Sequence record: MW460245.1
DNA length: 64,000 bases
Direction: 5' to 3' (one strand)
Part shown: piece by piece, positions 7,977-30,438 of the stretch
Numbering within the stretch: position 1 is the first letter of the stretch
Layout: the number at the start of each line of letters is the position of its first letter
Program-made: the position numbers and the translations under genes
The notes under the pieces: model-generated
Databases searched by the model: none
What the model was told of the DNA's origin: nothing
The model's input: only the letters and a program-made list of their open reading frames with translations

Positions 7977-8219
7977 ATGTTGCTGTCGAACACTTTGATG
8001 GGCGCTGTACTTGTTGCGGTTGGTATGCGGATGATTGCCGAGGACGAAGACTTCGACAACGCCGTTCAAAACGCAAACGTAGCCGATGCGATGGCACTGG
8101 TGCCGAACGTTACGGAAGCTGAGGTCGAGCATGCCCTCAACTCCCTGGCTTACGCGACGGCTGACAATGATTTTGAACACCCGTGGCAGCACGCCGCACA
8201 ACTTCACTCGAAGGAGTAA
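7977..8219 (+). CDS. hypothetical phage protein
   Basis: GGAG RBS. Confidence 0.7.
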   Translation: MLLSNTLMGAVLVAVGMRMIAEDEDFDNAVQNANVADAMALVPNVTEAEVEHALNSLAYATADNDFEHPWQHAAQLHSKE

Positions 8220-8509
8220 TGATGGGATTCATCACTGCAAGCGAAGCGCGGGCTATGGCGCCGACGCAGGAGCAACTCAACGAGGCACTTGTCGAGAAAC
8301 TTCTCGCGAAGTTCGATGAAAAGGTTCGCGCTGCAATCAGCAAGCGGAAGACGGAGGTTCGGTTCGGAGCCGACGTAACGCTGGGTCAGCATGCCCTGTT
8401 GGAGGCGAAACTGAAGGCGGCCGAATACACCGTACGTGTGCGTTCGTGTGAGGACGATGACGACGAGGACAGCGACACTGAAAACCGTCTCTATATTGTG
8501 AGCTGGTAA
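8219..8509 (+). CDS. hypothetical protein, member of the W-terminated paralog family
   Basis: TAATG overlap; ITASEAR...KLKAAEYTV...LYIVSW. Confidence 0.75.
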   Translation: MMGFITASEARAMAPTQEQLNEALVEKLLAKFDEKVRAAISKRKTEVRFGADVTLGQHALLEAKLKAAEYTVRVRSCEDDDDEDSDTENRLYIVSW

Positions 8510-8691
8510 TGAAAGACTACATCTGGGAAGAGCTGCTCGCAGCGGGCGAGGTGCTGGTCTTCGGTGGCCTGAGTGTAGCCACACTTGCGCTGCTCATTAC
8601 CGACAAGCCTATGCATGCAGTTGCTACGGTTCTGGTGGGTGTGCTCTTGCAATTGTGCTGTATCGAGCGCGCTATCAAAAAGAAGGAATGA
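8509..8691 (+). CDS. small membrane protein
   Basis: TAATG overlap; two hydrophobic segments. Confidence 0.7.
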   Translation: MKDYIWEELLAAGEVLVFGGLSVATLALLITDKPMHAVATVLVGVLLQLCCIERAIKKKE

Positions 8692-8694
8692 GCA

Positions 8695-8799
8695 ATGAAC
8701 ACCGCCGTAAACATCGCAGGTTTCCTCGGTTGCTGGGTGCTGATAAGCATCGCCTCCGCAGCCGCTTTCTGTTACGTCATCAAGATCGGGCGCGAGTAA
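8695..8799 (+). CDS. 34-aa single-TM protein (not in ORF track)
   Basis: MNTAVNIAGFLGCWVLISIASAAAFCYVIKIGRE* fills the gap. Confidence 0.55.
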   Translation: MNTAVNIAGFLGCWVLISIASAAAFCYVIKIGRE

Positions 8800-8816
8800 G
8801 CCCAAAAGGAACAAAC

Positions 8817-9623
8817 ATGAATTGCTCATTCGAACCGATCAGCGATGTTGAGATCGCCTTGGTGTTGAAGGCTGCTGGCATCGCTATGTACAACGCCAAC
8901 GTAGGTCTTCCGGAATTGGAAGACGGCGAGGTGGATACCCAAATCATCGACCAGATGATGGCAGACGGCATGGTACCGTCGCCCGACTCGGCACGCATCA
9001 CCTGTATCCTTGAGGCGTTCAAGGGCGCAGTGCGAGACTTCACGATGAATGGCGTTATCGAACGCGGCTTCAACAAGGCCATGAACGCAATGCTGGACGA
9101 GGATGAAGACGATCCTGAGGACGACGAAGACGTCCGCGACGATTCGGAAGGGGACGAGGACGAAGTGGATTCGGAGCATGTGGCTCGTGGTCCGGCGCCG
9201 AAGAAAGGCAGGAAGTTCACCTTGGAACGGCGCATGTCGCCTCAGCAGCAGCGGTTCGACCTGTACAGTGACATCTGGTACGTTCTGCAGGAACGCCTCG
9301 ACCTGCCGTTCGAAAAGCTGGATCCGCAATCCACCTTTAAGGAGCTTGGATCTAAGCAAAGGAAGTCGGCAACATTGGATGATATCGCCAAGGATCTTAC
9401 CGTAGAATACGACTTCGTATTCTTCAACTTTGACCAGCTTCGACCGGCTTCGACGTTGGTCGATCTGGTGCTGCATGTCATCGATGACCTGGAACGAGAC
9501 AGCGTGGATCACGCGAACATCGCTTTTGGTATGCCGAGTGCCCTGCTGAGCCGTGCGGATGCATGCAGTGCAGAACTCCTCCAGTGGCACGGGGCCATCG
9601 TGGCCACTATCGAAAACGAATAA
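8817..9623 (+). CDS. hypothetical protein with acidic linker and a possible degenerate acyl-carrier-protein-like domain
   Basis: AAAGGA RBS; D/E-rich linker; LQERLDLPFEKLDPQSTFKELG...EYD...TLVDLVLHV aligns by eye with ACP. Confidence 0.7.
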   Translation: MNCSFEPISDVEIALVLKAAGIAMYNANVGLPELEDGEVDTQIIDQMMADGMVPSPDSARITCILEAFKGAVRDFTMNGVIERGFNKAMNAMLDEDEDDPEDDEDVRDDSEGDEDEVDSEHVARGPAPKKGRKFTLERRMSPQQQRFDLYSDIWYVLQERLDLPFEKLDPQSTFKELGSKQRKSATLDDIAKDLTVEYDFVFFNFDQLRPASTLVDLVLHVIDDLERDSVDHANIAFGMPSALLSRADACSAELLQWHGAIVATIENE

Positions 9624-9636
9624 CCAAGGAACATTC

Positions 9637-10437
9637 ATGTTGAACGACAAGCAACTCACGAATCTCGCCAAGGTCGAGGCCCTCACCTTCAAGCTGAAGG
9701 CAGCTCTGAAGACTGCACGGGAACATGCCGAAAAAGGCGTCGGTCTGACCGCACTCCTGACCGATGCGGAAGACGTGCCGGACGATATCCTAATCGCCGC
9801 AACGCAGACCATGCAATGCTTCCGCGCTGCGATGGTATGCATGTTCGGCCCGGACGATCCCTCCGAGCAGGAGGTGTGGCAGACGTGCATCGATTCGCTG
9901 CTGATCCTGGAGAAGCTGCTGCAAGCCGATCCTGCCAAGTACCACACGCAGCTTGAGAGCGTCAACGTCTACCTGATCGCAGCTCGCGCGACGATGGAAA
10001 TGTTCGCGCTGCGCGACGAGATCATGGCCCGTGACGATGACTTCCTGACGCCGCTCGGCAATCACATGCTGCACGTGACTCGCTTGATGGGTGAGCGGCG
10101 CGCGGTCCAGGACATAGCAATCGACCGTGACGTGCCTGCATCCCTCCGCCTGATCGGCGGCTTCATCCATGTCACGCTTCCGCTTCTGCTGGAGAAGCCG
10201 TCGTCGCCTCATGTCATCGAGGCGAACACGAAACGGGTCGAAGACCTGAACCAATTCAGCGCTTACGTGGACGAGGTCGCGTCTTACGTCGAGCGCGGTG
10301 GCGCGAAGCAGCAAGCATCTTACCGAAGCGCCGAGAAGTACCATGAAGTCCTGATTGCAGTTCGTGACATCACGCGCGAATTCGCAGCAGCCCTCCAAAC
10401 CAAGTTGGCCCTTGAACTTATGAAGGTGGCACGATGA
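9637..10437 (+). CDS. hypothetical all-helical protein
   Basis: AAGGA RBS; 266 aa. Confidence 0.75.
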   Translation: MLNDKQLTNLAKVEALTFKLKAALKTAREHAEKGVGLTALLTDAEDVPDDILIAATQTMQCFRAAMVCMFGPDDPSEQEVWQTCIDSLLILEKLLQADPAKYHTQLESVNVYLIAARATMEMFALRDEIMARDDDFLTPLGNHMLHVTRLMGERRAVQDIAIDRDVPASLRLIGGFIHVTLPLLLEKPSSPHVIEANTKRVEDLNQFSAYVDEVASYVERGGAKQQASYRSAEKYHEVLIAVRDITREFAAALQTKLALELMKVAR

Positions 10438-13230: not shown

Positions 13231-13233
13231 ATA
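13227..13233 (+). promoter_or_regulatory. putative late promoter (TAAATA core)
   Basis: CAGTAAATAAG at a gene junction; motif recurs at 15027, 16528, 31234, 35107, 51512, 60560. Confidence 0.5.
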
Positions 13234-13332
13234 AGTAATAGAAACAGTTTCAGACCGCGCTTCAATTTGATGCGGATCGACTCCACGTGAGTTCGTTCTA
13301 CCATCGAAATCCTTTTGAAAAAGGAAGCGACA

Positions 13333-13565
13333 ATGAAACTGAGACACTTGAGGTCCTCCACCGCCGGCAAGATACCAGATATCACGGCGATGCCAGAGGG
13401 CCGCATTGCAATCAACACCACGGACGGGCGCCATCTACTCTACGGTAGATGGCGCCGTCGCCGCTTTGGCGGACTCTAACCTGGTCGAGCTCTACGACAG
13501 TGGTGGCTTGGTCCAGACAGTCAACACAAAAAACCCCACGCAAGGCAAAATCACGATCAACGTGA
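13333..13565 (+). pseudogene. frameshifted, truncated tail-fibre-like gene
   Basis: AAGGAAG RBS; MKLRHLRSSTAGKIPDITAMPEGRIAINTTDG, then a +1 G (GGG run near 13426) and AIYSTVDGAV...; matches the RS.T.GK.P...GE.AIN..DG.IY tail-fibre N-terminus. Confidence 0.6.
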
Positions 13566-13811
13566 TGGACGCCGTTCCTCGGCTTCACCGCAGCCACGTA
13601 TTACCTGAAGGACAACAACGTCAGCAGCAATCGCTCGCAGTCGTACATCCTGAACGCATCATACTCGCTGTCGAAGCGGACGCAGCTTTATGCTGACCTT
13701 GGCTATGTCAGCAACCGCGGCACGATGAACCAAGGCCTCGCCTACGGTCAACCGGTAGCAGCAGGTCGCTCGACGACGGCTGCTATGATGGGCATGCGTC
13801 ACACCTTCTAA
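13566..13811 (+). pseudogene. C-terminal fragment of a Gram-negative (Burkholderiales-type) porin (not in ORF track)
   Basis: WTPFLGFTAATYY...ASYSLSKRTQLYADLGYVSN...MMGMRHTF*; no start codon; YSLSKRTxxY and G.RH.F end are porin hallmarks. Confidence 0.8.
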
Positions 13812-13824
13812 CAAGGAGCAATCA

Positions 13825-15030
13825 ATGAAACGGATTTTCGGGCTCATAGCCCTTGTTCTCTCTGCTGGTCTCGCCAGCGCGCAGCAGCCGAAGCTGGAAG
13901 GCTTCGATTTGAAACAGGCATCGATCCCGCCGTTCGAGGTCCCTGCGTTCTACAACACGGTCCCCGTTGCAGGGATGACCGTCGGTACCCTTCTCGCGAA
14001 GGAAGAACTCAGCGTCCCGAACGCGAAGGCATGGCGCATCATGTACGTCTCGGAACGCAGCGATGGCACGCACGTTCCGGCATCCGGCATCGTGGTATCT
14101 CCGAAGGCTGCGTCGGTCGCCAGTCGTCCTGTTGTCGTATGGGCGCACGGTACGACCGGCACTGCGCGAGGGTGTGCACCGTCGCTGGCTCCGAATCCGG
14201 CACGTCAGCTGGTACAGCGCGGTTCAGAGGAGAACCTGCCCATCGATATCGGTATTCCGTTCCTGAACGATTGGATCGCGAATGGCTACACGGTGGTGGC
14301 TCCTGACTACGCTGGCCTGGGATCGAACGCTATGCATCATTACCTCCTCGGTGAGGATGCTGCGCGTGATATCCACAACATGGTGAGGGCTGCGCGTTCG
14401 TTGCATCAAGCGAACGCTGGCACAGACGTAGCGCTGTTCGGTTGGTCGCAAGGCGGACAAGCTGTTCTCTTTGCAGGTGAGAATGGCAAAGCCTACGCGC
14501 CTGACAACAAGATCAGGAGCATCGTTGCACTGGCACCTGCAGCTACCATCATGTCGCCGGCAATCAACGCGATCTTCAAGTCCAAGACACCATATGCTCT
14601 GATGCTGTCTGCCGGCTACATCGATGCCTACAAGGTCGACCGCGGTATCTTCACCGAAGACGGCCAGAAGCTGTTGGCTTCCACGCAGAAGAATTGCGTG
14701 GTATCGATGTTCGGTGACATCGCCAAGTCAGGCCCGGCTATCACGTCGAACGTATCGGACAATCCGGGTTGGGCTGCTGCGCTCGCTCTGAACAATGCAG
14801 GTTCGAAGGCATCGTCACCTGTTCTGGTGTACCAAGGGACCACCGACATGATCGTTCCGCCGGCGTCCACCAAGGCGTACACGCAACGCGCTACCGCAGC
14901 AGGAACGCAGGTGCAGGTCACCGTGACCTCTTCGTCAAGAAGGCTGAGATCATTGCTCGGATCAAGGCTGGCTTCTCCAACTGAGCAGTACGGCCCCGCA
15001 CTAATCCTGCGGGGTTTTTCACGGCTGTAA
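13825..15030 (+). CDS. secreted lipase/esterase (LIP family alpha/beta hydrolase), probably frameshifted near the C-terminus
   Basis: Signal peptide; AHGTTG, VVAPDYAGLG, GWSQG nucleophile, QGTTD acid residue; His-containing natural end GHRDLF...FSN* lies in another frame (14916-14984). Confidence 0.85.
   Translation: MKRIFGLIALVLSAGLASAQQPKLEGFDLKQASIPPFEVPAFYNTVPVAGMTVGTLLAKEELSVPNAKAWRIMYVSERSDGTHVPASGIVVSPKAASVASRPVVVWAHGTTGTARGCAPSLAPNPARQLVQRGSEENLPIDIGIPFLNDWIANGYTVVAPDYAGLGSNAMHHYLLGEDAARDIHNMVRAARSLHQANAGTDVALFGWSQGGQAVLFAGENGKAYAPDNKIRSIVALAPAATIMSPAINAIFKSKTPYALMLSAGYIDAYKVDRGIFTEDGQKLLASTQKNCVVSMFGDIAKSGPAITSNVSDNPGWAAALALNNAGSKASSPVLVYQGTTDMIVPPASTKAYTQRATAAGTQVQVTVTSSSRRLRSLLGSRLASPTEQYGPALILRGFSRL
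14994..15019 (+). terminator. rho-independent terminator
   Basis: CCCCGCA-CTAATCC-TGCGGGG-TTTTT, 10 bp after the alternative-frame stop at 14984. Confidence 0.8.
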
Positions 15031-18906: not shown

Positions 18907-18925
18907 CGCGAAAACGTGCTATAAT
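18907..18925 (+). promoter_or_regulatory. early extended -10 promoter
   Basis: CGCGAAAACGTGCTATAAT, identical to 30377-30395. Confidence 0.75.
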
Positions 18926-19996: not shown

Positions 19997-20037
19997 GCGT
20001 CCCCTGAACATCTCACAACACTTCAACGGAGTTCATC

Positions 20038-20964
20038 ATGCCGCATTTCCACAATACCGCATCTGGCAAAATGGTCAACGCTCGCATCCACGAGAAGCAT
20101 TGGCGCAAGTTGCCGTTCCAGATTCAACCGGCACCGGAGCATTTCCCGGTCGGTACGCTGTTCACGGTCGACTGCCTGGACCGCGACAAGGGCAAGGTCT
20201 TCGAGGTTCGCAAGATCGTGCAGAACAGCTCGCGCGGTTATGTGCTCGAAACCACGACGCCTCAGGAAGGCGCAGGTTCGGGGCCGGATGCGATCTTCCC
20301 CGAGGGCATGATGGAATCGTTCCACATTTGCCACGTGAACAAGATTCTGGCACGAGGCAACGGTCCACTGGTCATCAAGTATCAGTACCATGTGCATCAC
20401 GACGCGAAGCACGCGGCGCAAACCGCAGAAGTGTTGGCGGTGATGAAGCACGAAGCCGAGCAAGGTGTGCCGCCGAAGTGGCGCAAGGGCGTATGGACGC
20501 CGGGTCATGGGCCGCGCAGCCTGAAGGGCTATCATGTCATTCAGTCTTACGACGTCCATGCGTTCGCCTATCTCGTGTTCCTGGCATCGGGCCGCGATTC
20601 GCTGCGCAACGTCGATTACAAGGAGATGATGGCGCATCTGGTCGAACGCCATCCGGAGCATGTGCGAGATCGCGGTGACTGGCTGGAAGCTTTCTGGTTT
20701 CCCAAGAAGTGGTTCAAGCGGTGGGTGCGGCAGAACGTGAACCGCTTCCTCTGCAATCTGCATGAGGAGCAAAAGCGCGAGGAAGAGGAATCGAACCGCA
20801 TGTGGGACGACGTGTCCGACACGATGGACGACACGCCTGAATGGCAGCCGTCGGAAGACGAACCGAAACAGCCCTTTCCTCTTACGCTCGCGGTCGAAGT
20901 ACCGGAGCAGCAGGAAGGTGACGATGACGAGGCGAATGACGATACGTTTGCCCTTCATCCGTAA
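20038..20964 (+). CDS. hypothetical protein with acidic C-terminus
   Basis: GGAG RBS; 308 aa. Confidence 0.8.
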   Translation: MPHFHNTASGKMVNARIHEKHWRKLPFQIQPAPEHFPVGTLFTVDCLDRDKGKVFEVRKIVQNSSRGYVLETTTPQEGAGSGPDAIFPEGMMESFHICHVNKILARGNGPLVIKYQYHVHHDAKHAAQTAEVLAVMKHEAEQGVPPKWRKGVWTPGHGPRSLKGYHVIQSYDVHAFAYLVFLASGRDSLRNVDYKEMMAHLVERHPEHVRDRGDWLEAFWFPKKWFKRWVRQNVNRFLCNLHEEQKREEEESNRMWDDVSDTMDDTPEWQPSEDEPKQPFPLTLAVEVPEQQEGDDDEANDDTFALHP

Positions 20965-21003
20965 CATCAACACACCTATCACACCAATCATAAGGAACGA
21001 ATC

Positions 21004-21573
21004 ATGAGCGCACCTGCATTCAAAGGTCTGAACCGCAAGCAACGTCGGGCCCTGCAGTTCGCCGGCCGCAGCGACACGTTTTACGAGCAACACAAAGCAG
21101 GGCTCGCACAAGTCGAGGCGAAACAGGCATTGGAGGAGGGCCTGCCTCCTGTTCAGACGGTCATCAAGGAGGTGGATGGCTGGATCGCCATCCCTGAGTT
21201 CGACGGCACCTTCATGCCGTATGTCATCAACTACATGATCCCGTACGCGGACCTGGACGACAAGTACAAGTCGGCTGCGTTCAACTACTCCGGTCAGTAC
21301 CGCGAGAAGTGCGAGGGCAACGTGCCGGCCGCATATCAGGCGCTGCTGTCGGAATGGTTCTACGGCGGCCTCCTGAAACTGGAGCTCACGTTCAAGCCGA
21401 ACGTGCGGTGCGCGAACGGTGATACGGCACACAACGCCATCATGAAACGCCTGCGCCTCTACTTGGGAGAAATCCTCGGCAGCTTCGAGCCGTCGCACGA
21501 GCACAAGTTCGCGTACCTCGTGTACGTGCTGGACATGGTGTGCACCAATGCACGCTGGACCCCTTGCAAGTAA
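21004..21573 (+). CDS. conserved-type phage protein
   Basis: AAGGA RBS; WFYGGL...ILGSFEPSHEHK motif. Confidence 0.8.
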   Translation: MSAPAFKGLNRKQRRALQFAGRSDTFYEQHKAGLAQVEAKQALEEGLPPVQTVIKEVDGWIAIPEFDGTFMPYVINYMIPYADLDDKYKSAAFNYSGQYREKCEGNVPAAYQALLSEWFYGGLLKLELTFKPNVRCANGDTAHNAIMKRLRLYLGEILGSFEPSHEHKFAYLVYVLDMVCTNARWTPCK

Positions 21574-21583
21574 AGGAGACATC

Positions 21584-22051
21584 ATGAGCACGAAAGCAGG
21601 CGTCTACAAGCTGGACGAGTTGAAGCAAGGTGTTTCGGTGTGGGTCGTTCACCTCATCCCGAATCTTCATACCGGGCTCTTCCAAGCTTCACTGAGCGAG
21701 CCTTACAAGTTGTGTCGCAAGCCAAGGGCGTGTTTCATCGGGTCTGACGACGACTTGACGTACCTGTCACACGACATGCCGTACGTGCAACCGTACAGGC
21801 ATCGTCTGATGCGAGATGGTCGCACGCACTACGAGTTCCATGATATGTGCGGGGACCGTGGCGTGTTCCCGCGTGGCGAGTTCAAGTACCTGAACCACAA
21901 CCGAGGCTTCAAGTCCCTGCGTAAGGCTCTGCGTTACATGCGCCTCTACGATGGCACCAACGTGCCGGCTGAAGAATTGCGCCGTCTGCGCCTCTGGAAG
22001 ACTGACGACGCGCTCGTTGACGAATTCGACTACAGCGACCTTGACGCGTAG
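21584..22051 (+). CDS. hypothetical phage protein
   Basis: AAGGAG RBS. Confidence 0.75.
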   Translation: MSTKAGVYKLDELKQGVSVWVVHLIPNLHTGLFQASLSEPYKLCRKPRACFIGSDDDLTYLSHDMPYVQPYRHRLMRDGRTHYEFHDMCGDRGVFPRGEFKYLNHNRGFKSLRKALRYMRLYDGTNVPAEELRRLRLWKTDDALVDEFDYSDLDA

Positions 22052-22135
22052 CCCAGCGTCTCGAAATGTTAAGAAAGGTGCAAACTTGACTTGACAGTTT
22101 TTGACATTTGGTACGGCACAGCAGTTTCAAGAAGG

Positions 22136-22206
22136 TTGGCGCAGGGACGAAAAGCGTGTTACAATGAAGTGCGCGCACTCCCTGCGCTGTTGCGAAAATA
22201 CAACAC
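22136..22206 (+). promoter_or_regulatory. early promoter module with downstream palindrome
   Basis: TTGGCG 22136-22141, 18 bp, TG-T-TACAAT 22160-22165; CTGTTG-CGAAAATA-CAACAC 22187-22206. Confidence 0.8.
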
Positions 22207-22209
22207 TAG

Positions 22210-22237
22210 TTCAACGTCGAAGAAAGGACACGTCATG
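22210..22237 (+). repeat. conserved leader/RBS repeat
   Basis: TTCAACGTCGAAGAAAGGACACGTCATG (one mismatch to the 3126 copy). Confidence 0.85.
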
Positions 22238-22567
22238 AAGAAAATTCTGGCAGTCATTTGCATGGCATTCGCGATCAACGCGCAAGCGGAACTGCAACGC
22301 GTTGCAACGTCACAATCGAACATGGCCTGGGCTAACATCAGGGCTACTCCGGAATGCATGGCTGGCATGACCGCGAAAGAAACGAAGGTCAACGGCGTGC
22401 GTACCATCGAGGCGGCTTTGCCGGGATGCAGTCGGTACTTTGTGTACGACACGGACGGCTACATGGTCATCACCATGAATCCGAACGAAGCAAAAGACCT
22501 GCGCGCTGAACTGAAGGCGTACCGCGCAGAAACGGCTGAACTGGTTCGTATGGCTCGGGGGTACTGA
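22235..22567 (+). CDS. secreted/periplasmic protein
   Basis: Sec signal MKKILAVICMAFAINAQA. Confidence 0.8.
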   Translation: MKKILAVICMAFAINAQAELQRVATSQSNMAWANIRATPECMAGMTAKETKVNGVRTIEAALPGCSRYFVYDTDGYMVITMNPNEAKDLRAELKAYRAETAELVRMARGY

Positions 22568-22568
22568 A

Positions 22569-22907
22569 ATGCAAATCAAGAATGATGCAATCGCGCAGCA
22601 CGCGAACACCCTCATCGCCTATGATGCAGGCAAGAAGAAGGTCAGCGTCGCGTACCTGACCTGGTTCCTCGGCGGCATTTTCGGCTTTCACCTGATCTAC
22701 ACCCGCAAGTGGTTCTACTTCATCATCCAGTGGGCCCTGCTGTACGGATTTGTCGTGGCTTCTGATCCGAAGAGCGAGTTGTTCGGTTCGCGCTGGGAGT
22801 TTCTGGCGACGTGGGCAGCCTTCATCGTCATCGACGGTCTCATCCTGTGGCATCACGTAAGCAGCCACAACAAACGGCTCGTTAAGAAGTTGTCGGGCGG
22901 CAAGTAA
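22569..22907 (+). CDS. TM2 (NINE) domain membrane protein
   Basis: KKKVSVAYLTWFLGGIFGFHLIY..KW is the TM2 signature. Confidence 0.8.
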   Translation: MQIKNDAIAQHANTLIAYDAGKKKVSVAYLTWFLGGIFGFHLIYTRKWFYFIIQWALLYGFVVASDPKSELFGSRWEFLATWAAFIVIDGLILWHHVSSHNKRLVKKLSGGK

Positions 22908-23012
22908 CGCATCACCGATCTTTAGGTTCACCGAATTCAAGAGTGCCAACGTAGTAAAGGTCTGTACCAACCGTAGTTCATAACTTCAATCCTTTCCAGG
23001 AACTTTTCATCA

Positions 23013-26000
23013 ATGCAAAAGACTCAAGTTTCCATCCTCGTCGCTTCCCTGTTCGCAGCAGCCGGTGTCAACGCAGCAGGTTCGCTCCAATTCGTGGATC
23101 GTGGCAATCCGAACCAGATCGCGAAGGACTGCATCGACGGCAAGTCGGGTAGCGGTTGCGTCGGTACGCGCAGCAGCGGTTACGTGGCAGTGTCGACCGC
23201 ATCCCCGATTCTGCAGGGCAATGGTGCAGTCGGCGGTACGGGTGGCATCGCGATCGGTGATCGTGCGAACGCGAACAAGGACAACAAGGGCACCGGCGAC
23301 AACAACGGCGGCGCAATGGCGATCGGCGTGGCAGCGCAAGCAATCAACAACAGCGCGATGGCGATCGGTACGGCAGCAGTCGCAACCGGCAACACGGCAA
23401 TCGCGATGGGTCGTCAGTCGGCAGCAACCGGCGAGTTCTCGATGGCGATGGGCAACGTCGCGAACGCAACGGGCGACCGCAGCGTGGCAATTGGTCACTC
23501 GGCGAACGCAGTCGGCGTGCAGTCGGTGGCGATCGGCAACTCGGCAGGTGGTGCCAATGACGGCGTGTCGCAAGGCGCGTCCTACGATGCAGCGACGCAG
23601 ACCCGTTCGGTCGGTGCGCGTAGCGTGGCAATCGGTGCGAATGCACAAACGACCGGCGATGACCAGATCGCGATCGGCAACGGCGCACGCGGCATGACCT
23701 CGGTGGCTGGCAAGGCAGCGTTCTCGAACGAAGCTGTGGCAGCAACTGGTGCGGTTTCGTTCGGCGATCCGAAGGGCACGGGTGTGCAGCGCCAGATCAA
23801 GGGCATCGCCGGTGCAACGGACGGCAACGACGCCGTGAACCTGAACCAGCTGACGGCCGTGAACAGCAGCCTGAGCACGTCGATCGGTGCAGTCGATCAA
23901 CGCGTTACGACGGTGGACAATCGCGTCACGACCGTTTCGAACTCGCTGTCCACGTCGATCAACACGACGAACCAGAACGTGACGAATCTGAGCACGTCGG
24001 TGGACAGCAGCGTGAAGTCGCTCAACACGTCGATCACCAACGTGGACAACCGCGTCACGAACATGGGCGCATCGCTGTCGACCTCGATCAGCAACATCGA
24101 TGGCCGTGTGACGGTGAACGAAGGCAACATCACGAATCTGCAGGCAGCGGACAAGCTGAACGTGAAGTACGATTCGCTGTCGAAGGACAAGGTCACGCTG
24201 GGCGGTGCGAACGGCACGGTGCTGTCGAACGTGAAGGCCGGCACGGCTGATACCGATGCTGTGAACGTCGGTCAACTGAACGGCAAGCTGGCGCCGATCA
24301 ACACGTCGATCACCAACATCAACACGTCGCTTTCGACGGCAACGTCCAACATCACCAACCTGCAAGGTGACGTGAAGAACCTCAGCACGACGGTCGGCGG
24401 TCACACCACGCAGATCAACAACCTGAGTACGTCGCTGAACACGACGAACCAGAACGTGTCGAACCTGACGAACGTGGTCAACGGTCATACGACCGACATC
24501 GGCGCGCTGCAAGAAGCCGACAAGCGCAACGTGAAGTACGATGGCGCCTCGGGCTTCGACAGCGTTACGCTGGCCGGCGGCAAGAACGGCACGAAGGTGA
24601 CCAACGTGGCAGACGGCGCGCTGACCGCAACGTCGAAGGACGCAGTGAACGGCTCGCAGCTCTACGCGACGAACCAGAACCTGACGAACCTCGGCGACAC
24701 GGTGAACCAGATCGATGGTCGCGTGACGAAGGTGGAAGGCAACATCACCAGCATCGGCGACAAGGTGACGAACATCGACAACTCGGTGAACGGCCTGAAG
24801 CAAGACGCCCTCCAGTGGAACAGCACGATGGGCGCCTATGATGCATCGCATGGTTCGGGTGAAGCGCAGAAGATCACGAACGTCGCCGACGGCAAGGTCG
24901 CAGCAGGCAGCAAGGACGCGATCAACGGCGGTCAGCTCTATGACGCGGTGAAGGACGGCGTGTCGAACGGCACGAAGAATGCGGTTCAGTACGACGGTGA
25001 CGACCACACGAAGGTCACGCTGGGCGGTGTCGGTGGTACGACCATCACCAACGTCAAGGCAGGTGAACTGTCGGCAACGTCGAAGGACGCAGTGAACGGC
25101 TCGCAGCTCTTCGAAACGAACACCAACGTTTTGAATCTGGATGGCCGTGTGACTAACATCGATGGCCGTGTCACGAACCTGGACGGCCGTGTGACGAAGG
25201 TCGAAGGTGACGTCACCAACGTCATCAACGGCGAAGTCGGTCTGGTGCAGCAGCATGGTGCTCGCAACCCGATCACGGTCGGCAAGGACACGCTCGGCGG
25301 CGTCGTGAAGTTCAACAATGCTGACGGCGAGACGCGCACGCTGGCAGGTGTGACGGCTGGTGTGGCTGACACGGACGCGGTGAACGTCAAGCAACTGACG
25401 ACAGCAACCGGCAACCTGCAGAACCAAATCAACGTGCAAGGCGACACTATCGTCAAGCATGGCGATACGCTGGTGCAGCAAGGCAACGCGATCACCAACC
25501 TGAACACGAGCGTTACGAACCTTGGTGACAAGGTCACGAACATCGATGGCCGTGTGACGACGAACACGACGAACATCCAGGCACTCCAGCAAGACGCTCT
25601 GCAGTTCAACAAGACCGTCGGGGCCTACGATGCGACGCGTGGCGGCAACGCAACGAAGATCACGGGCGTGGCAGCAGGTAACGTCAACGCAACCAGCACC
25701 GACGCGATCAACGGCTCGCAGCTCTACGCGACCGAGCAGAAGATCAAGGACGGCATCGCTGGTGACATGAAGAATGTGGTCAAGTACACGGACGACACGC
25801 ACGCTGGCATTGCGCTGGACGGCAAGGGCGGTACGAAGATCACCAACGTTCGCGCTGGTACGCTGTCGAACACCAGCACGGACGCGGTGAACGGCTCGCA
25901 ACTGTTCGCAACGAACAATGCAGTTACGAACCTCGATCAACGCGTGACCAAGAACGAGACGAGCATCACCAATCTCGACAACTCGGTCAATGGTCTGAAG

Positions 26001-26798
26001 CAGGATGCTTTGCTGTGGAACAAGGACCTCGGTGCATTCGATGCTTCGCACGGTGGTGTTGCTTCCAAGATCACCAACGTGGCTGACGGTGCGGTCAACG
26101 CTGACTCGAAGGACGCTGTCAACGGCAGCCAGCTGTACAAGTCGATCCAGAATGCTGGTAACCAGTTCGGTTACATCAAATACGACCAGCATGTCGACGG
26201 TTCGATCAACTACGGCAGCATCACGCTGGGTGGTGGTCAAGGTGGTCTGACGCAGATCCACAACGTCGCCGATGGTGTGGCTCCGACTGATGCTGTCAAC
26301 GTTCGTCAGATGGAACAGCATGTGAAGGTCGTCTCGCAAGAGACGGTCAAGAACTACTGGAACGACCACAAGGATGAGCTGAAGGGTGATAAGGGCGACA
26401 CCGGCGCAGCGGGTCCGCAAGGTCCGAAGGGCGACGATGGTGCAGCAGGCCCGGCAGGTCCGAACCAACCGGCACCTCTTCCGGAAGGTCTGGCAACGCA
26501 AGACGATCTGGGCAAGGTGCAGCGTGACCTGAACGGTCTGCGTGGCGATATGAGCGCGCTCAAGAAGGACATGAACGCAGGTATCGCATCGGCGATGGCT
26601 GTTGCATCGCTCCCGCAACCGAACCGTCCGGGCGAAAACATGGTCGCACTGGGCACGGCAACGTACCAGGGCGCACAAGGTTTCGCGATCGGCATCTCGC
26701 GTGTCACGTCGAACGATAAGTGGGTCATCAAGGGTGCAGTGACGACCAACACGCGTGGTGCGTTCGGTGCAGCACTTGGCGCTGGCTACAAGTTCTAA
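23013..26798 (+). CDS. YadA-family trimeric autotransporter adhesin
   Basis: Signal peptide; YadA head repeats (AMAIG/SVAIG..A.A); neck motifs DAVN..QL; stalk coiled coils; C-terminal anchor GIASAMAVASLPQ...GAGYKF. Confidence 0.95.
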   Translation: MQKTQVSILVASLFAAAGVNAAGSLQFVDRGNPNQIAKDCIDGKSGSGCVGTRSSGYVAVSTASPILQGNGAVGGTGGIAIGDRANANKDNKGTGDNNGGAMAIGVAAQAINNSAMAIGTAAVATGNTAIAMGRQSAATGEFSMAMGNVANATGDRSVAIGHSANAVGVQSVAIGNSAGGANDGVSQGASYDAATQTRSVGARSVAIGANAQTTGDDQIAIGNGARGMTSVAGKAAFSNEAVAATGAVSFGDPKGTGVQRQIKGIAGATDGNDAVNLNQLTAVNSSLSTSIGAVDQRVTTVDNRVTTVSNSLSTSINTTNQNVTNLSTSVDSSVKSLNTSITNVDNRVTNMGASLSTSISNIDGRVTVNEGNITNLQAADKLNVKYDSLSKDKVTLGGANGTVLSNVKAGTADTDAVNVGQLNGKLAPINTSITNINTSLSTATSNITNLQGDVKNLSTTVGGHTTQINNLSTSLNTTNQNVSNLTNVVNGHTTDIGALQEADKRNVKYDGASGFDSVTLAGGKNGTKVTNVADGALTATSKDAVNGSQLYATNQNLTNLGDTVNQIDGRVTKVEGNITSIGDKVTNIDNSVNGLKQDALQWNSTMGAYDASHGSGEAQKITNVADGKVAAGSKDAINGGQLYDAVKDGVSNGTKNAVQYDGDDHTKVTLGGVGGTTITNVKAGELSATSKDAVNGSQLFETNTNVLNLDGRVTNIDGRVTNLDGRVTKVEGDVTNVINGEVGLVQQHGARNPITVGKDTLGGVVKFNNADGETRTLAGVTAGVADTDAVNVKQLTTATGNLQNQINVQGDTIVKHGDTLVQQGNAITNLNTSVTNLGDKVTNIDGRVTTNTTNIQALQQDALQFNKTVGAYDATRGGNATKITGVAAGNVNATSTDAINGSQLYATEQKIKDGIAGDMKNVVKYTDDTHAGIALDGKGGTKITNVRAGTLSNTSTDAVNGSQLFATNNAVTNLDQRVTKNETSITNLDNSVNGLKQDALLWNKDLGAFDASHGGVASKITNVADGAVNADSKDAVNGSQLYKSIQNAGNQFGYIKYDQHVDGSINYGSITLGGGQGGLTQIHNVADGVAPTDAVNVRQMEQHVKVVSQETVKNYWNDHKDELKGDKGDTGAAGPQGPKGDDGAAGPAGPNQPAPLPEGLATQDDLGKVQRDLNGLRGDMSALKKDMNAGIASAMAVASLPQPNRPGENMVALGTATYQGAQGFAIGISRVTSNDKWVIKGAVTTNTRGAFGAALGAGYKF
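24627..25110 (+). repeat. intragenic 37-bp exact direct repeat in the autotransporter stalk
   Basis: GCAACGTCGAAGGACGCAGTGAACGGCTCGCAGCTCT at 24627-24663 and 25074-25110. Confidence 0.85.
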
Positions 26799-26822
26799 GG
26801 CAGTAAAGTAAGTGCAGCATTC

Positions 26823-26902
26823 GGGAGGGCTTCGGCCCTCTCCTTCGTCGCGTGACGAGCACACCCCAAAGGGCGGCCCGTCATCGTACAGGTCGCCCTT
26901 TT
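26823..26902 (+). terminator. two tandem hairpin terminators
   Basis: GGAGGGC-TTCG-GCCCTC.. at 26823-26843 and GGGCGGCC-loop-GGTCGCCC-TTTT at 26871-26902. Confidence 0.65.
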
Positions 26903-26914
26903 CTCGTTTCTACC

Positions 26915-27322
26915 ATGACTCAACCGACTGAATCCAAACCGATCAAGGTCCTGCGCCTTAGCGCCCACAACGTGCTGGCGCGTATGTTTCACTTGCACGG
27001 CAACACCTACCAGATCATTGTCACGCGTGGTGATGAGTTCGGGCCGGTGAGCCGTACCCAGAACATCACTGGCGAGTCTGTCCGCCACGCGAAGACTCGA
27101 TTCCAGGAGTGGACGGCAACGCACTACCCTGAAGTTCCGCATAACCCGCCGCCTGCCCCTCGAATTCCACCGCGTCCGGTAGCGCCTCCGATGCCAGTAC
27201 CTGTCAGACCGCCGCAGTTCTTTGATGTACCTATTGAAATGCCGGAACACAAGCGTGGCCGTGCGGAACGCCGCGATTCCCATCGCCGTGAACATTCGCG
27301 CAAAGAAGCGCGCTGGAACTAA
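26915..27322 (+). CDS. hypothetical protein with proline-rich region
   Basis: ORF after the terminators; PPPAPRIPPRPVAPPMPVPVRPP; weak RBS. Confidence 0.65.
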   Translation: MTQPTESKPIKVLRLSAHNVLARMFHLHGNTYQIIVTRGDEFGPVSRTQNITGESVRHAKTRFQEWTATHYPEVPHNPPPAPRIPPRPVAPPMPVPVRPPQFFDVPIEMPEHKRGRAERRDSHRREHSRKEARWN

Positions 27323-27332
27323 GGAGAAGGAA

Positions 27333-27752
27333 ATGATTGTCGAAGAGATCAAGAAGGTGGAGAAGCGCCTGGACGTCACCCGCGCGAATCTGGAACTGTG
27401 GCGTCGCGAGCATCATATCCACAACGACACATCCTCGCATCGTTGCTACAGCCGTGCGTTGCTGCAACACCTGACGGTACTGGATGTGTTCGTGACGACA
27501 CTTGGTATCTCACTCAACGAAAAGGAGTTGGAGGCTATTCGTGACGAGTGGGACAAGGTCGATCAGCCGCTGCCTGCAATGATCGACGGTCGCATTCGCC
27601 CGCGCACTGAGTGTCCGTACCGCGCTAAGTGCGAGATCGCGCAAGACGGTGCATGTCATCACCTCGGTGTGAAGCACCTGCAAGCTTTCTCGTGTGCAAC
27701 AGCACGTGGCTTTGCGCTGGTCGAACGCAACGAATCGGAGGAGAAGGCGTGA
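27333..27752 (+). CDS. hypothetical protein with Cys/His cluster
   Basis: AAGGAG RBS; CPYRAKC...CHHLG...FSCATARG. Confidence 0.75.
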   Translation: MIVEEIKKVEKRLDVTRANLELWRREHHIHNDTSSHRCYSRALLQHLTVLDVFVTTLGISLNEKELEAIRDEWDKVDQPLPAMIDGRIRPRTECPYRAKCEIAQDGACHHLGVKHLQAFSCATARGFALVERNESEEKA

Positions 27753-28234
27753 ACTCTCTCAACAGAACCCGCATCCGAGAGATGCCTGCAGGTAGTGACC
27801 TGTTCGAACAGGCACCTCACCTGAAGACCATCTGGTCGCCCGAGAAAACGGCGCTTGCCGCAGAGTACGCGAAGGCTGATGCAGGCACAGGCGAGGTGTT
27901 CGCTATCACCTACGACAAGGCAGTGGTTGGGACTACCGGCTTCTTCATCGAGCCCGGCGATCCGATCGACACTGTTCGCCTGCGCTGGACCGGTGTCATT
28001 GAGCAATACAGGCGCCGCGGTATCACGCGCGATGCTCTCACGCTGCTGGTGCCGAAGCTGCGTGCCAAGTATCCGCAGTGCATCAAGATTCTTGAAGCTG
28101 TACCGATCAACGACAACGGCAAGAACTTCATCATCCCTTTCTTCACGTCGATGGGCTTCGTACCGCAAGGTGAGCCGTACAAGGAAGACTGGGCCGACCA
28201 CATGTGGCAAGATTACGTTTGGAACAAGGAATGA
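27749..28234 (+). CDS. GNAT-family acetyltransferase
   Basis: GGAGG RBS; WTGVIEQYRRRGIT = acetyl-CoA motif A; FFTSMGF at the end. Confidence 0.75.
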   Translation: MNSLNRTRIREMPAGSDLFEQAPHLKTIWSPEKTALAAEYAKADAGTGEVFAITYDKAVVGTTGFFIEPGDPIDTVRLRWTGVIEQYRRRGITRDALTLLVPKLRAKYPQCIKILEAVPINDNGKNFIIPFFTSMGFVPQGEPYKEDWADHMWQDYVWNKE

Positions 28235-28776
28235 AAACTCTCACCGTCACCAAAGACACCACGGCCCAAGAGATTTTCGACTTCGTGGCGCATCACCTGC
28301 TGCTCCAGGCATGGCCTGCTATGTCGAAGGACGGGCAAAACTGCACCTTCCGAGGTCAAGGGCGAGCCTGTTCGGTCGGTTGCCTGATTCCGAATCCTAT
28401 GTACAGCAAGCTCATGGAAGGGCAGGCGAGCGACGACCTCATCCACGCAGCACGGAACTTTCTGGACGAGCATCCGGACCAGCGCAACGCAGCAGAAGAC
28501 AACTATGGAATCGGCGAGGCGCGTGCCCGTTATTTCGTCCTGCTCGAACCGCACCAGAGCCTCTTGTCTGCCCTGCTGGACGCACACGACTCGTACTACG
28601 AGGCATTCAAAAGCGAAGCAACCGGCTGGACTGCGCCTGACAGGGCAACTAAGGCAGGCAAGCGTACCGTGCGAGACTTCTGGCTTCGGCGACTGGCCTA
28701 TGTGGCTCAATCGTACAAGCTCCAGTACGACATGGCAAAGGTCGAGTATTACTTCAACAACGTACATCCCATCTGA
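28231..28776 (+). CDS. hypothetical phage protein
   Basis: ATGA-coupled; C.FRG..GRACSVGCLIP...Y motif. Confidence 0.75.
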   Translation: MKTLTVTKDTTAQEIFDFVAHHLLLQAWPAMSKDGQNCTFRGQGRACSVGCLIPNPMYSKLMEGQASDDLIHAARNFLDEHPDQRNAAEDNYGIGEARARYFVLLEPHQSLLSALLDAHDSYYEAFKSEATGWTAPDRATKAGKRTVRDFWLRRLAYVAQSYKLQYDMAKVEYYFNNVHPI

Positions 28777-28785
28777 GGAGCCATC

Positions 28786-28971
28786 ATGGCAACCGTTCTG
28801 CATCGCGGTGTTAAACCTTCCGAGAAGAAACACAAGGTCACCTGTGACTCGTGCAACTCCGTGATTGAGTATCAGCAGCATGAAGGCAAGGTCACCTACG
28901 ACCAGCGCGACGGCAACTTCATCACCTTCAAGTGTGAAGTGTGCGACTCTAACATCAACAAGGCCATCTGA
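28786..28971 (+). CDS. small Zn-ribbon protein
   Basis: GAGGAG RBS; CDSC...CEVC. Confidence 0.75.
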   Translation: MATVLHRGVKPSEKKHKVTCDSCNSVIEYQQHEGKVTYDQRDGNFITFKCEVCDSNINKAI

Positions 28972-28978
28972 GGTCTCT

Positions 28979-29506
28979 ATGCTCTGGGCACGTCTCAAAT
29001 CCATTCACCGGCTTCACAACTATCACGGCATCGGCGAAACGCCGTGGTGGCAAGGCAACATGTCGAATCCTCGTGACTTCATCCATATGATGACGGTCTA
29101 TCAGTCGTCATTGAAGAATTACTACGAGGCTTCGAATCGCGAGCAGTTCCGGGACGAACGCGATCCTGGTCACTTCTACCTCATCGAGATTTTCGATCGT
29201 ATCGAGGTGGGCTACAAGAAGTACGAGTACAAATCCAGAGGCTTCGTCGGCCTGTTCGATAAGCACGCACGCGAATGGCTGCAACCTCACGCGAAGGAAA
29301 ACGCGTGGTGCAAAACGCATTGGGAATATCCGGTGTTCGTGTTTTCTGACTGCTATCAGTACACGGAGACCGATGGATTCGGCCGCGTTGGTGTCCCAGG
29401 AGCCAGCAATGGCATGTACCATACGCTGGGGACCGAGGAGGCTCTGTTGAAACGGGCCCAGGAGTTCTGGAAGAAAAACAAGATGCGTGAAAAGGTGAGC
29501 GCATGA
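28979..29506 (+). CDS. hypothetical phage protein
   Basis: GAGG RBS. Confidence 0.75.
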   Translation: MLWARLKSIHRLHNYHGIGETPWWQGNMSNPRDFIHMMTVYQSSLKNYYEASNREQFRDERDPGHFYLIEIFDRIEVGYKKYEYKSRGFVGLFDKHAREWLQPHAKENAWCKTHWEYPVFVFSDCYQYTETDGFGRVGVPGASNGMYHTLGTEEALLKRAQEFWKKNKMREKVSA

Positions 29507-29934
29507 AAACGCGTATTCAGGATGTCTGCAAACTCATTTGGGACCTGCGCGACCATCGGCATGTTGTCATCTACGACACCCTGTCCACGCTGACTGAGTT
29601 CAGTGAGTGCCTTTCCGAGCACATAGGCTGTCTGAACTTCGACTCGCGAGTCCGCATTCTCGGTTCGCTTCGAAGCGATACAGCCATCCAGCATGACCTT
29701 CAGGCCTTCGACGAAGGGCATGTCGAGGTGTTGTGTATCTCGCGTAACAAGCTGGCTGGGTATCGCATCAACTGTCAGGGCTACCCTGTGACCGTGTCGG
29801 CTATCTGCGACATGCAGACCAACGAGGTGCTGCAGGCGATGGCACGTTTCGGCCTGTCGGTCGATCTTCGCAACAAACTTCCTGGAGTGTGGGATGGCGT
29901 TCAATCCGCAGCAAGAATTCAAGATGACCGCTGA
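29503..29934 (+). CDS. hypothetical protein resembling a stand-alone degenerate helicase C-terminal domain
   Basis: LQAFDEGHVEVLCISRNKLAGYRI and LQAMARFG resemble SF2 motifs V and VI. Confidence 0.55.
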   Translation: MKTRIQDVCKLIWDLRDHRHVVIYDTLSTLTEFSECLSEHIGCLNFDSRVRILGSLRSDTAIQHDLQAFDEGHVEVLCISRNKLAGYRINCQGYPVTVSAICDMQTNEVLQAMARFGLSVDLRNKLPGVWDGVQSAARIQDDR

Positions 29935-30364
29935 TGTCATCCCCTTCACGCCCTATGTGGCGCGTCGCATTGTGCAGCAGTTCATTGCTGACGTGGACGA
30001 CGACAAGCGCATCCGCCCTATGCTGTCTGTGTGGTACGAGGCGAACGGTGTGAAGGCATACCTGCGCCTTGGTCGCTACAACGATCCGGACGGCAATCCG
30101 CGTTACGCCATCGTTCTCGCCAACATCGGCGTCCCTGAAGTCATGCGACGCCAAGGCGTGTTCACCGACGTTGTGGAGTACATGGCCGAGTTCGCGGCGA
30201 TGCGCAAGTACGGCCTCATCATCGAGAACGCGCTGACGAAGCACGTGGCGAAGTTCGCCAAGAAGCGCAAGTACGTGCCTTCGATCAACTCGCCCGACAG
30301 CTTCTGGCATCCCGCGTTTCGCGATATTGGGCCATGCCCTTGGGTCAAAGCAGCAGGACGCTAG
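29894..30364 (+). CDS. GNAT-family acetyltransferase
   Basis: LANIGVPEVMRRQGVF = motif A; start may be 29924. Confidence 0.7.
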   Translation: MAFNPQQEFKMTADVIPFTPYVARRIVQQFIADVDDDKRIRPMLSVWYEANGVKAYLRLGRYNDPDGNPRYAIVLANIGVPEVMRRQGVFTDVVEYMAEFAAMRKYGLIIENALTKHVAKFAKKRKYVPSINSPDSFWHPAFRDIGPCPWVKAAGR

Positions 30365-30376
30365 ACTCACACACGT

Positions 30377-30438
30377 CGCGAAAACGTGCTATAATGTGCT
30401 TACGCGCACCACGGACAGGTGTTGCGTAGAAACAACAC
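30377..30438 (+). promoter_or_regulatory. early promoter module with downstream palindrome
   Basis: CGCGAAAACGTGCTATAAT 30377-30395; GTGTTG-CGTAGAAA-CAACAC 30419-30438. Confidence 0.8.

Follow-up and report, generated by a model that had tools for sequence, protein, structure and literature searches.

Trimeric autotransporter adhesins (TAAs) are surface proteins of the type Vc pathway, in which the protein is exported by Sec, anchors in the outer membrane as a 12-stranded barrel with the help of BAM and folds its passenger outside the cell. To our knowledge, the only well-known phage-borne TAAs sit on temperate prophages, and among these are the Eib proteins, the immunoglobulin-binding TAAs of Escherichia coli lambdoid prophages. 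EibG is treated in one paper (PMC13534694). TAAs have been described as exclusively bacterial surface proteins, and the studied member of the TAA family of the Burkholderia cepacia complex, BCAM0224 of B. cenocepacia J2315, is reported to be a collagen-binding adhesin with PF01391 collagen repeats (PMC3417366). Here we describe a TAA gene that lies in a 64,000-nucleotide stretch of sequence record MW460245.1 (henceforth referred to as ‘the window’, in whose coordinates all positions are given unless they are attributed to the record; a window position is the record position minus 62000). Over positions 20000-30000 the window is 100% identical to Burkholderia phage BCSR5 (MW460245.1). This myovirus, with a genome of 227,351 bp, came from sewage, with B. 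cepacia BCC378 as the isolation host; it is part of a therapeutic phage bank, and its delivery by inhalation has been tested (PMC8573233). In the deposited record almost all genes, including that of the adhesin (QRE00188.1), are labelled ‘hypothetical protein’.

Judged by its sequence, the BCSR5 adhesin is a canonical, full-length type Vc TAA, the parts of which are as follows:

23013..26798, plus strand: TAA of 1261 amino acids (QRE00188.1), assigned by Pfam head, stalk and anchor families and by matches in the PDB
23013..23075, plus strand: Sec signal peptide, residues 1-21, with a hydrophobic segment at residues 6-24 and aligning with the signal peptides of chromosomal homologues
23190..23870, plus strand: YadA-like head repeats and first neck, approximately residues 60-286 (three PF05658 matches, E 2.5e-15)
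23883..26372, plus strand: stalk, approximately residues 291-1120 (ten PF05662 matches, E 9.8e-81, and a motif map)
26385..26465, plus strand: collagen-like run of nine G-X-Y triplets, residues 1125-1151 (found by regular expression, with a weak PF01391 match)
26613..26795, plus strand: YadA-type membrane anchor, residues 1201-1261 (PF03895, 59.7 bits against a cut-off of 22.7)

The predicted signal peptide has a basic N-terminus, a hydrophobic core and a small-residue cleavage motif, and is followed by an FVDRGNP...C-x8-C motif that the adhesin and its chromosomal homologues have in common. The first neck-type motif is at residues 273-280, and the coiled coils of the stalk are broken by nine further neck-type connectors (ten in total) and by three DALL-type motifs; together with the collagen-like segment, these coiled coils appear compatible with a trimer. 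At the other end of the protein, the C-terminal 91 residues align without a gap to the Hia translocator (2gr7, E 7e-19), and the sequence ends in ...GYKF, which provides the terminal aromatic residue of a BAM beta-signal. The remaining PDB matches are to stalk or head fragments of SadA, AtaA, BpaA and BpaC. The hallmarks of a type Vc protein, namely a Sec signal peptide, a YadA anchor, a terminal aromatic residue and a passenger built of head, neck and coiled coil, are thus all in place and are conserved, and the Pfam matches and the Hia alignment bear out the initial annotation of this DNA, which had called an intact 1261-residue TAA with signal peptide, head, neck, stalk and a complete anchor ending in F.

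The adhesin resembles the TAAs of the B. cepacia complex in having a signal peptide, the FVDRGNP...C-x8-C motif, a YadA-like head, neck-type connectors, DALL-type motifs and a YadA anchor, but differs from them in being phage-encoded, in its phage promoter and operator, in its lower GC content at third codon positions (GC3) and in having no two-component regulator or lipoprotein as neighbours. The likeness to the better-known TAAs is of a more limited kind: Hia shares the gapless anchor alignment, and SadA and AtaA the stalk connector matches, but Hia, YadA, SadA and AtaA are encoded by bacterial chromosomal or plasmid genes and their homology to the adhesin is by individual domains only. The Eib proteins are likewise TAAs carried as accessory genes in phage genomes, but they belong to temperate prophages, are much shorter and bind immunoglobulin, and no Eib entry was found among the PDB matches of the adhesin (E <= 1e-3) or among its top 120 homologues. 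Nor does the setting recall that of the Eib genes, a temperate phage with integration and repressor functions: no such functions are annotated in BCSR5 and no copy of the gene was found in the bacterial genomes searched, which, given the poor annotation, is a weak negative.

The best 120 homologues of the adhesin are almost all TAAs of the B. cepacia complex, at 36–42% identity over 87–100% of the length; the head is 54–56% identical to the heads of these proteins, and head and anchor together span a range of 54–59%. The codon composition of the gene is partly adapted to the phage, as judged from a GC3 of 0.765, compared to 0.68 ± 0.055 for 66 other phage genes and 0.83–0.90 for the bacterial homologues. 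No closer copy was found in 185,579 bacterial species-representative genomes, which therefore rules out host contamination or a recent chimera, and no close relative was found in IMG/VR or JGI metagenome contigs. On these comparisons the adhesin is of host-genus stock but old, having been in phage genomes long enough for identity to fall to ~40%. Its closest relative (P0002, 977 amino acids) is encoded on a 3.5-kb contig (locus L004, run SRR32473250) with a phage-like rather than Burkholderia-like GC content of 54.7%, and is 50% identical to the adhesin overall, 59% in the head and 73% in the C-terminal part. Like the adhesin, P0002 has its anchor preceded by a collagen-like run, and the stop codon of its gene is followed by a hairpin; unlike the adhesin, P0002 is shorter and lacks part of the stalk, and the flanks of its contig are non-homologous to BCSR5. 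A G-X-Y run directly before the anchor occurs in just two of the 121 top homologues, P0002 being the sole partner of the adhesin in this respect. Between the two genes the ratio of non-synonymous to synonymous substitution rates (dN/dS) is ~0.29 overall and 0.15 in the anchor/C-terminal region, with dS near 1, which indicates purifying selection along the whole gene.

The initial annotation had proposed examining the distribution of such genes among related phages. This was done, and TAAs were found in Burkholderia glumae phage FLC9, in at least 8 FLC9-related contigs of jumbo size from uncultured phages and in a BCSR5 relative. FLC9 (322 kb) is the sole other true phage in GenBank with a detectable YadA anchor, and its gp240 (L002:4111-6276) is a 721-residue TAA in which we recognise, besides a signal peptide and a YadA anchor, a Cys-Gly-Asn loop at the N-terminus and a coiled coil rich in Ala; downstream of its gene is a double hairpin comparable to that of BCSR5. 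FLC9 was isolated as a lysing biocontrol phage (PMC11530567), and it is placed in a different genome-based family from BCSR5 (PMC12388082), so that the two TAA acquisitions appear to be independent. When IMG/VR was scanned with an anchor alignment, 18 loci were found, of which 11 are on contigs of 159–524 kb; this size distribution is biased because the search patterns were built from BCSR5- and FLC9-type anchors. In every case the encoded protein has a signal peptide and an anchor with a terminal F, and many of these proteins also contain collagen-like runs. Four of the contigs (L013 and L018-L020) are syntenic with FLC9 and carry the TAA in the same slot, with neighbouring proteins just 43–83% identical, and four more distant FLC9 relatives (L016, L017, L021 and L022) have kept a TAA. 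A distant BCSR5 relative (L011), with four genes in common at 29–49% identity, has a 349-residue collagen-type TAA of its own at a different position, and a further group (L005-L010) encodes a 437-residue TAA, which in the only contig inspected of this group (L009) lies beside a large terminase, methyltransferases and RtcB. That unrelated jumbo phages keep TAAs strengthens the case for a real function.

The FLC9-type TAAs are like the BCSR5 adhesin in being phage-encoded in a setting of small accessory genes and in having, besides the signal peptide, a stalk compatible with a trimer and a YadA anchor with F as its last residue. They are nevertheless of a different lineage, with an anchor just 33–42% identical to that of BCSR5 and a length of 499–775 amino acids, and instead of a YadA head they have the Cys-Gly-Asn loop, collagen runs and an Ala-rich coiled coil. 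Their C-terminal ~300 residues are conserved and the N-terminus is variable. As a side observation, the Cys-Gly-Asn-rich loop comes right after the signal peptide in FLC9 (L002) and in L012-L022 (at ~8000-10360 in each of the latter) and is often followed by long G-X-Y runs. Residues 468-541 of gp240 are 49–53% identical to annotated tail fibres of Vibrio phages (~191–196 kb), a resemblance that suggests exchange of modules between virion fibres and membrane adhesins. Matching records that the phage collection files as ‘Acinetobacter phage MD-2021a’ or under Salmonella names (CAKLQH020000029.1, CAKLQF020000030.1, AFYI01000003.1 and AGRM01000004.1) were discounted, since they represent bacterial contigs in which Ata has an OmpA-like gene as its neighbour; the TAAs that they contain are chromosomal and can yield false ‘phage’ matches. 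Our literature searches returned no paper tying TAAs to jumbo or virulent phages.

The BCSR5 gene is preceded by a promoter with an operator-like site and followed by a terminator region:

22136..22165, plus strand: sigma-70-like promoter with a -35 element TTGGCG, an 18-nucleotide spacer and a TG-extended -10 element TACAAT (TGTTACAAT), found by consensus scan
22188..22205, plus strand: 18-bp palindromic operator-like site, TGTTGC-N6-ACAACA, ~23 nucleotides downstream of the -10 hexamer
26823..26910, plus strand: terminator region of GC-rich hairpins, the last of which (26868-26901) is followed by a U-run, found by RNA folding

The promoter is in a 183-nucleotide intergenic gap (22052-22234) and belongs to a recurrent class: the class of the 16-mer GAAAACGTGCTATAAT was observed 3 times where 0.08 are expected, and for TGnTAYAATG 4 occurrences compare with an expected 0.36. 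The short form TGnTAYAAT, counted over the whole genome, was not in excess of our own rough chance estimate, and significance is confined to the longer forms of the motif and to its pairing with the palindrome. Other promoters of this class in the window are at 18910, 30380 and 2764, and those at 30380 and 2764 have the palindrome downstream in the same geometry. Within the window, the palindrome is present at 11 sites (with at most one mismatch) spanning 2722-39752, compared to 0.40 expected, and genome-wide all 12 exact copies are at 35–102 kb of the BCSR5 record, where they are paired with promoters. The promoter class is similarly restricted to the accessory arm of the genome, where it is common to other units. 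The operator-bearing promoter of the initial annotation thus stands, the promoter/palindrome combination is specific to the phage, and the palindrome is probably the binding site of a phage regulator acting on the whole gene class. We also observed the palindrome beside promoters in either orientation, and some promoters have two copies (2722 and 2797 flanking the -10 element at 2764; also 39683 and 39735). An inverted repeat around the -10 hexamer (22139-22147 and 22179-22187) that had been sighted by eye is non-recurrent, and we claim no feature there. That the promoter would be active early can be inferred from its resemblance to host-type promoters.

The 116 nucleotides downstream of the adhesin gene fold with -45.4 kcal/mol (z -3.34), and the 105-nucleotide spacer before it has no significant RNA structure (z +0.66), in keeping with the earlier statement that no obvious terminator occurs until the two hairpins behind the adhesin. 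There is also no terminator upstream that separates the unit from the preceding genes, and read-through from upstream promoters is therefore possible as well. An Rfam scan of 21.5–27.5 kb returned no match, and the 5′ leader of the adhesin gene is not conserved between BCSR5 and L004.

Between the promoter and the adhesin gene are two small genes:

22235..22567, plus strand: orphan secreted protein of 110 amino acids, from its translation, with a signal peptide at residues 1-18 and an AQA cleavage site called by eye
22569..22907, plus strand: small TM2-like membrane protein of 112 amino acids, with a PF05154 match and a hydrophobic segment at residues 25-43

The first gene and the signal peptide of its product are as initially described. 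The protein belongs to no family in Pfam, PHROG or NCBIfam, and in an exhaustive HMMER search against 1.84 billion representatives its sole matches were the protein itself and three repetitive long proteins. An AlphaFold2 model made without an alignment is of low confidence (predicted local distance difference test score, pLDDT, of 63), and a Foldseek comparison of the model with the PDB gave nothing below E 0.19. The sole PADLOC matches, weak ones to PtuB (E 1e-4), were judged spurious. The second gene is also present and matches PF05154 (E 1e-4, profile positions 2-44 of 51), but at 22.8 bits, under the cut-off of 27.9, the name ‘TM2 protein’ is upheld only as a likeness; no homologue was found among 5.8 billion proteins or GenBank phages. 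SadB and TpgA are helper proteins of TAAs, and we considered a similar role for the two small proteins; this is unsupported, since neither has a homologue beside any other TAA among 36 loci fetched. For the same reason the functional three-gene ‘module’ that had been proposed is not supported: both small proteins are orphans and the association is positional only. In FLC9, a 62-residue membrane protein with one hydrophobic segment (L002:3841-4029) is encoded upstream of the adhesin gene and has no sequence relation to the TM2-like protein of BCSR5.

The unit is part of a long plus-strand arm of small accessory genes that extends from 31 to ~113 kb of the BCSR5 record. The structural genes are at 114–151 kb (sheath, endolysin) and 165–226 kb (baseplate, tail fibres) of the record, and the adhesin gene, at 85–89 kb, is ~25 kb away from the nearest structural block and outside the virion module. 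Its neighbours are small accessory genes, which include Phage_g100, a GNAT acetyltransferase and a weak MerR-like protein. No lysogeny gene had been seen in the window, and the same applies to the whole 227-kb record, in which no integrase, repressor or partition gene is annotated, a weak negative given how thin the annotation is.

Several other features of the genome came to light. A 401-residue protein with a signal peptide (13825-15030, plus strand) gives a match to the secretory lipases (PF03583, E 7.7e-16), bears the nucleophile motif GWSQGG and is a second exported host-like protein encoded by BCSR5, and a periplasmic ABC substrate-binding protein is annotated at 43.5 kb of the record. 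An unannotated 594-bp gap (13231-13824) contains the remnant of a Gram-negative porin gene, of which only the C-terminal end is left (Porin_4, 26.9 bits against a cut-off of 27; last residue F); the one break counted is a 5′ truncation without a start codon, and the remnant is decayed host-like envelope DNA. A 156-residue open reading frame (29894-30364, plus strand) takes up most of a 516-bp unannotated stretch and lies just upstream of the promoter/operator pair at 30380/30420. Outside the window, at 7.8–10.9 kb of the record, GTP cyclohydrolase I and 7-carboxy-7-deazaguanine synthase are annotated, which suggests a 7-deazaguanine DNA modification pathway in BCSR5.

We lean, with little more than even confidence, towards the view that the locus is a phage-resident transcription unit with a functional adhesin as its main product, the fibre of which makes the infected cell adhesive. 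Following the type Vc pathway, the adhesin would be exported by Sec during infection, three C-terminal anchors would form a 12-stranded barrel in the outer membrane (four strands per anchor) with the aid of the host BAM, and the passenger would then fold outside the cell into a trimeric fibre with the YadA-like head at its tip and, by analogy with YadA and BadA, a length of roughly 100 nm. Export to the outer membrane of the infected cell is well supported by the predicted signal peptide and anchor, and sticky fibres encoded by the phage are probably displayed on infected cells. The pay-off that we prefer is adhesion or aggregation, because the head is conserved with the adhesins of the host genus: the fibre would make the infected cell stick to neighbouring Burkholderia cells or to surfaces, and lysis would thus take place inside a clump of susceptible hosts. 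Four considerations weigh against this interpretation. A long surface fibre could equally serve as a shield; the collagen-like runs, and the gp240 segment that resembles Vibrio phage tail fibres, point to an exchange of modules with virion fibres; the annotation of BCSR5 is too poor for lysogeny functions to be excluded, and the lifestyle of the phage is entered as undetermined in a review (PMC12388082); and the ‘early’ timing has no ground other than the resemblance of the promoter.

The first of these considerations corresponds to the best-surviving alternative, a serious rival although we regard it as unlikely, that the fibre acts in superinfection exclusion or receptor masking, as a dense layer that keeps other phages off their receptors or progeny phages off the debris of lysed cells. 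There is a precedent in the lipoprotein Llp of phage T5, which keeps progeny from adsorbing to lysed-cell debris. The evidence for outer-membrane targeting (the Pfam anchor, the hydrophobic segment and the Hia alignment) serves a shield as well as it does an adhesin, the promoter/operator class is common to an arm of small accessory genes, which is the usual site of exclusion functions in large lytic phages, and the conservation of TAAs across jumbo-phage lineages would fit too. However, the PADLOC family matches amount to coiled-coil noise only, and the head is conserved with that of genuine adhesins.

Still less probable, in our judgement, although it too is a serious rival, is that the adhesin is a host-fitness gene of a carrier or pseudolysogenic state, in which the phage persists for generations and the adhesin aids the colonisation of surfaces or hosts by the carrier, a part also ascribed to the Eib adhesins of E. 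coli prophages. Such a role would be in line with the other host-like exported products of the same arm (the secretory lipase, the periplasmic substrate-binding protein and the porin remnant) and with the operator at the promoter, through which the gene can be regulated. It is at odds with the lack of an annotated integrase, partition or repressor gene in BCSR5, with the absence of a copy of the gene from every bacterial assembly searched and with the isolation of FLC9 as a phage that lyses its host (PMC11530567).

We consider it very improbable that the protein is a fibre associated with the virion or with debris, carried on particles, for example by way of outer-membrane fragments, and acting in adsorption. 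Assembly in the cytoplasm does not fit a protein with a Sec signal peptide and a barrel that depends on BAM, and the gene stands at a distance from the structural modules, with a promoter and a terminator of its own, despite the collagen-like runs, the match of the anchor to phrog_17426 (‘adhesin’, tail category) and the likeness of the gp240 stalk piece to Vibrio phage tail fibres; a gene in a morphogenesis module and a product without an export signal, by which a phage virion fibre is recognised, are not found here. Finally, that the gene is a neutral passenger or an assembly artefact, host DNA recently captured or mis-assembled and without a role in the phage, is hardly credible, for although the arm does hold decayed host-like material in the form of the porin remnant, the adhesin frame is intact over 3.8 kb with a dN/dS of 0.29, no bacterial copy exceeds 42% identity, the composition is partly phage-adapted and the upstream promoter is phage-specific.

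Overall, the adhesin is an addition to a known family in a setting that is unusual and apparently recurrent. What is new is that a canonical, selectively maintained TAA is encoded by a cultured jumbo myovirus without recognisable lysogeny genes, and that the FLC9 clade of jumbo phages has a fixed TAA of a second lineage. Further, the ‘hypothetical’ gene of BCSR5 is homologous to adhesins of the host that count as virulence factors, which is of relevance to the safety screening of a phage held in a therapeutic bank. The recurrence of TAAs suggests that phages gain repeatedly from remodelling the infected cell’s surface. The finding also makes the roles of the hundreds of accessory genes of jumbo phages a matter that can be approached by observation. 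We suggest, as a tentative and still rather doubtful generalisation, that in several unrelated jumbo-phage lineages of Burkholderia-like hosts (BCSR5, the FLC9 clade and others) the infection programme may include outer-membrane adhesins as a selected and recurrent element, the fibres being built on a doomed cell to gather fresh hosts or to fence off competitors. If this is true, adhesive fibres on the infected cell would be an ‘extended phenotype’ of the phage that has so far not been described for virulent phages.

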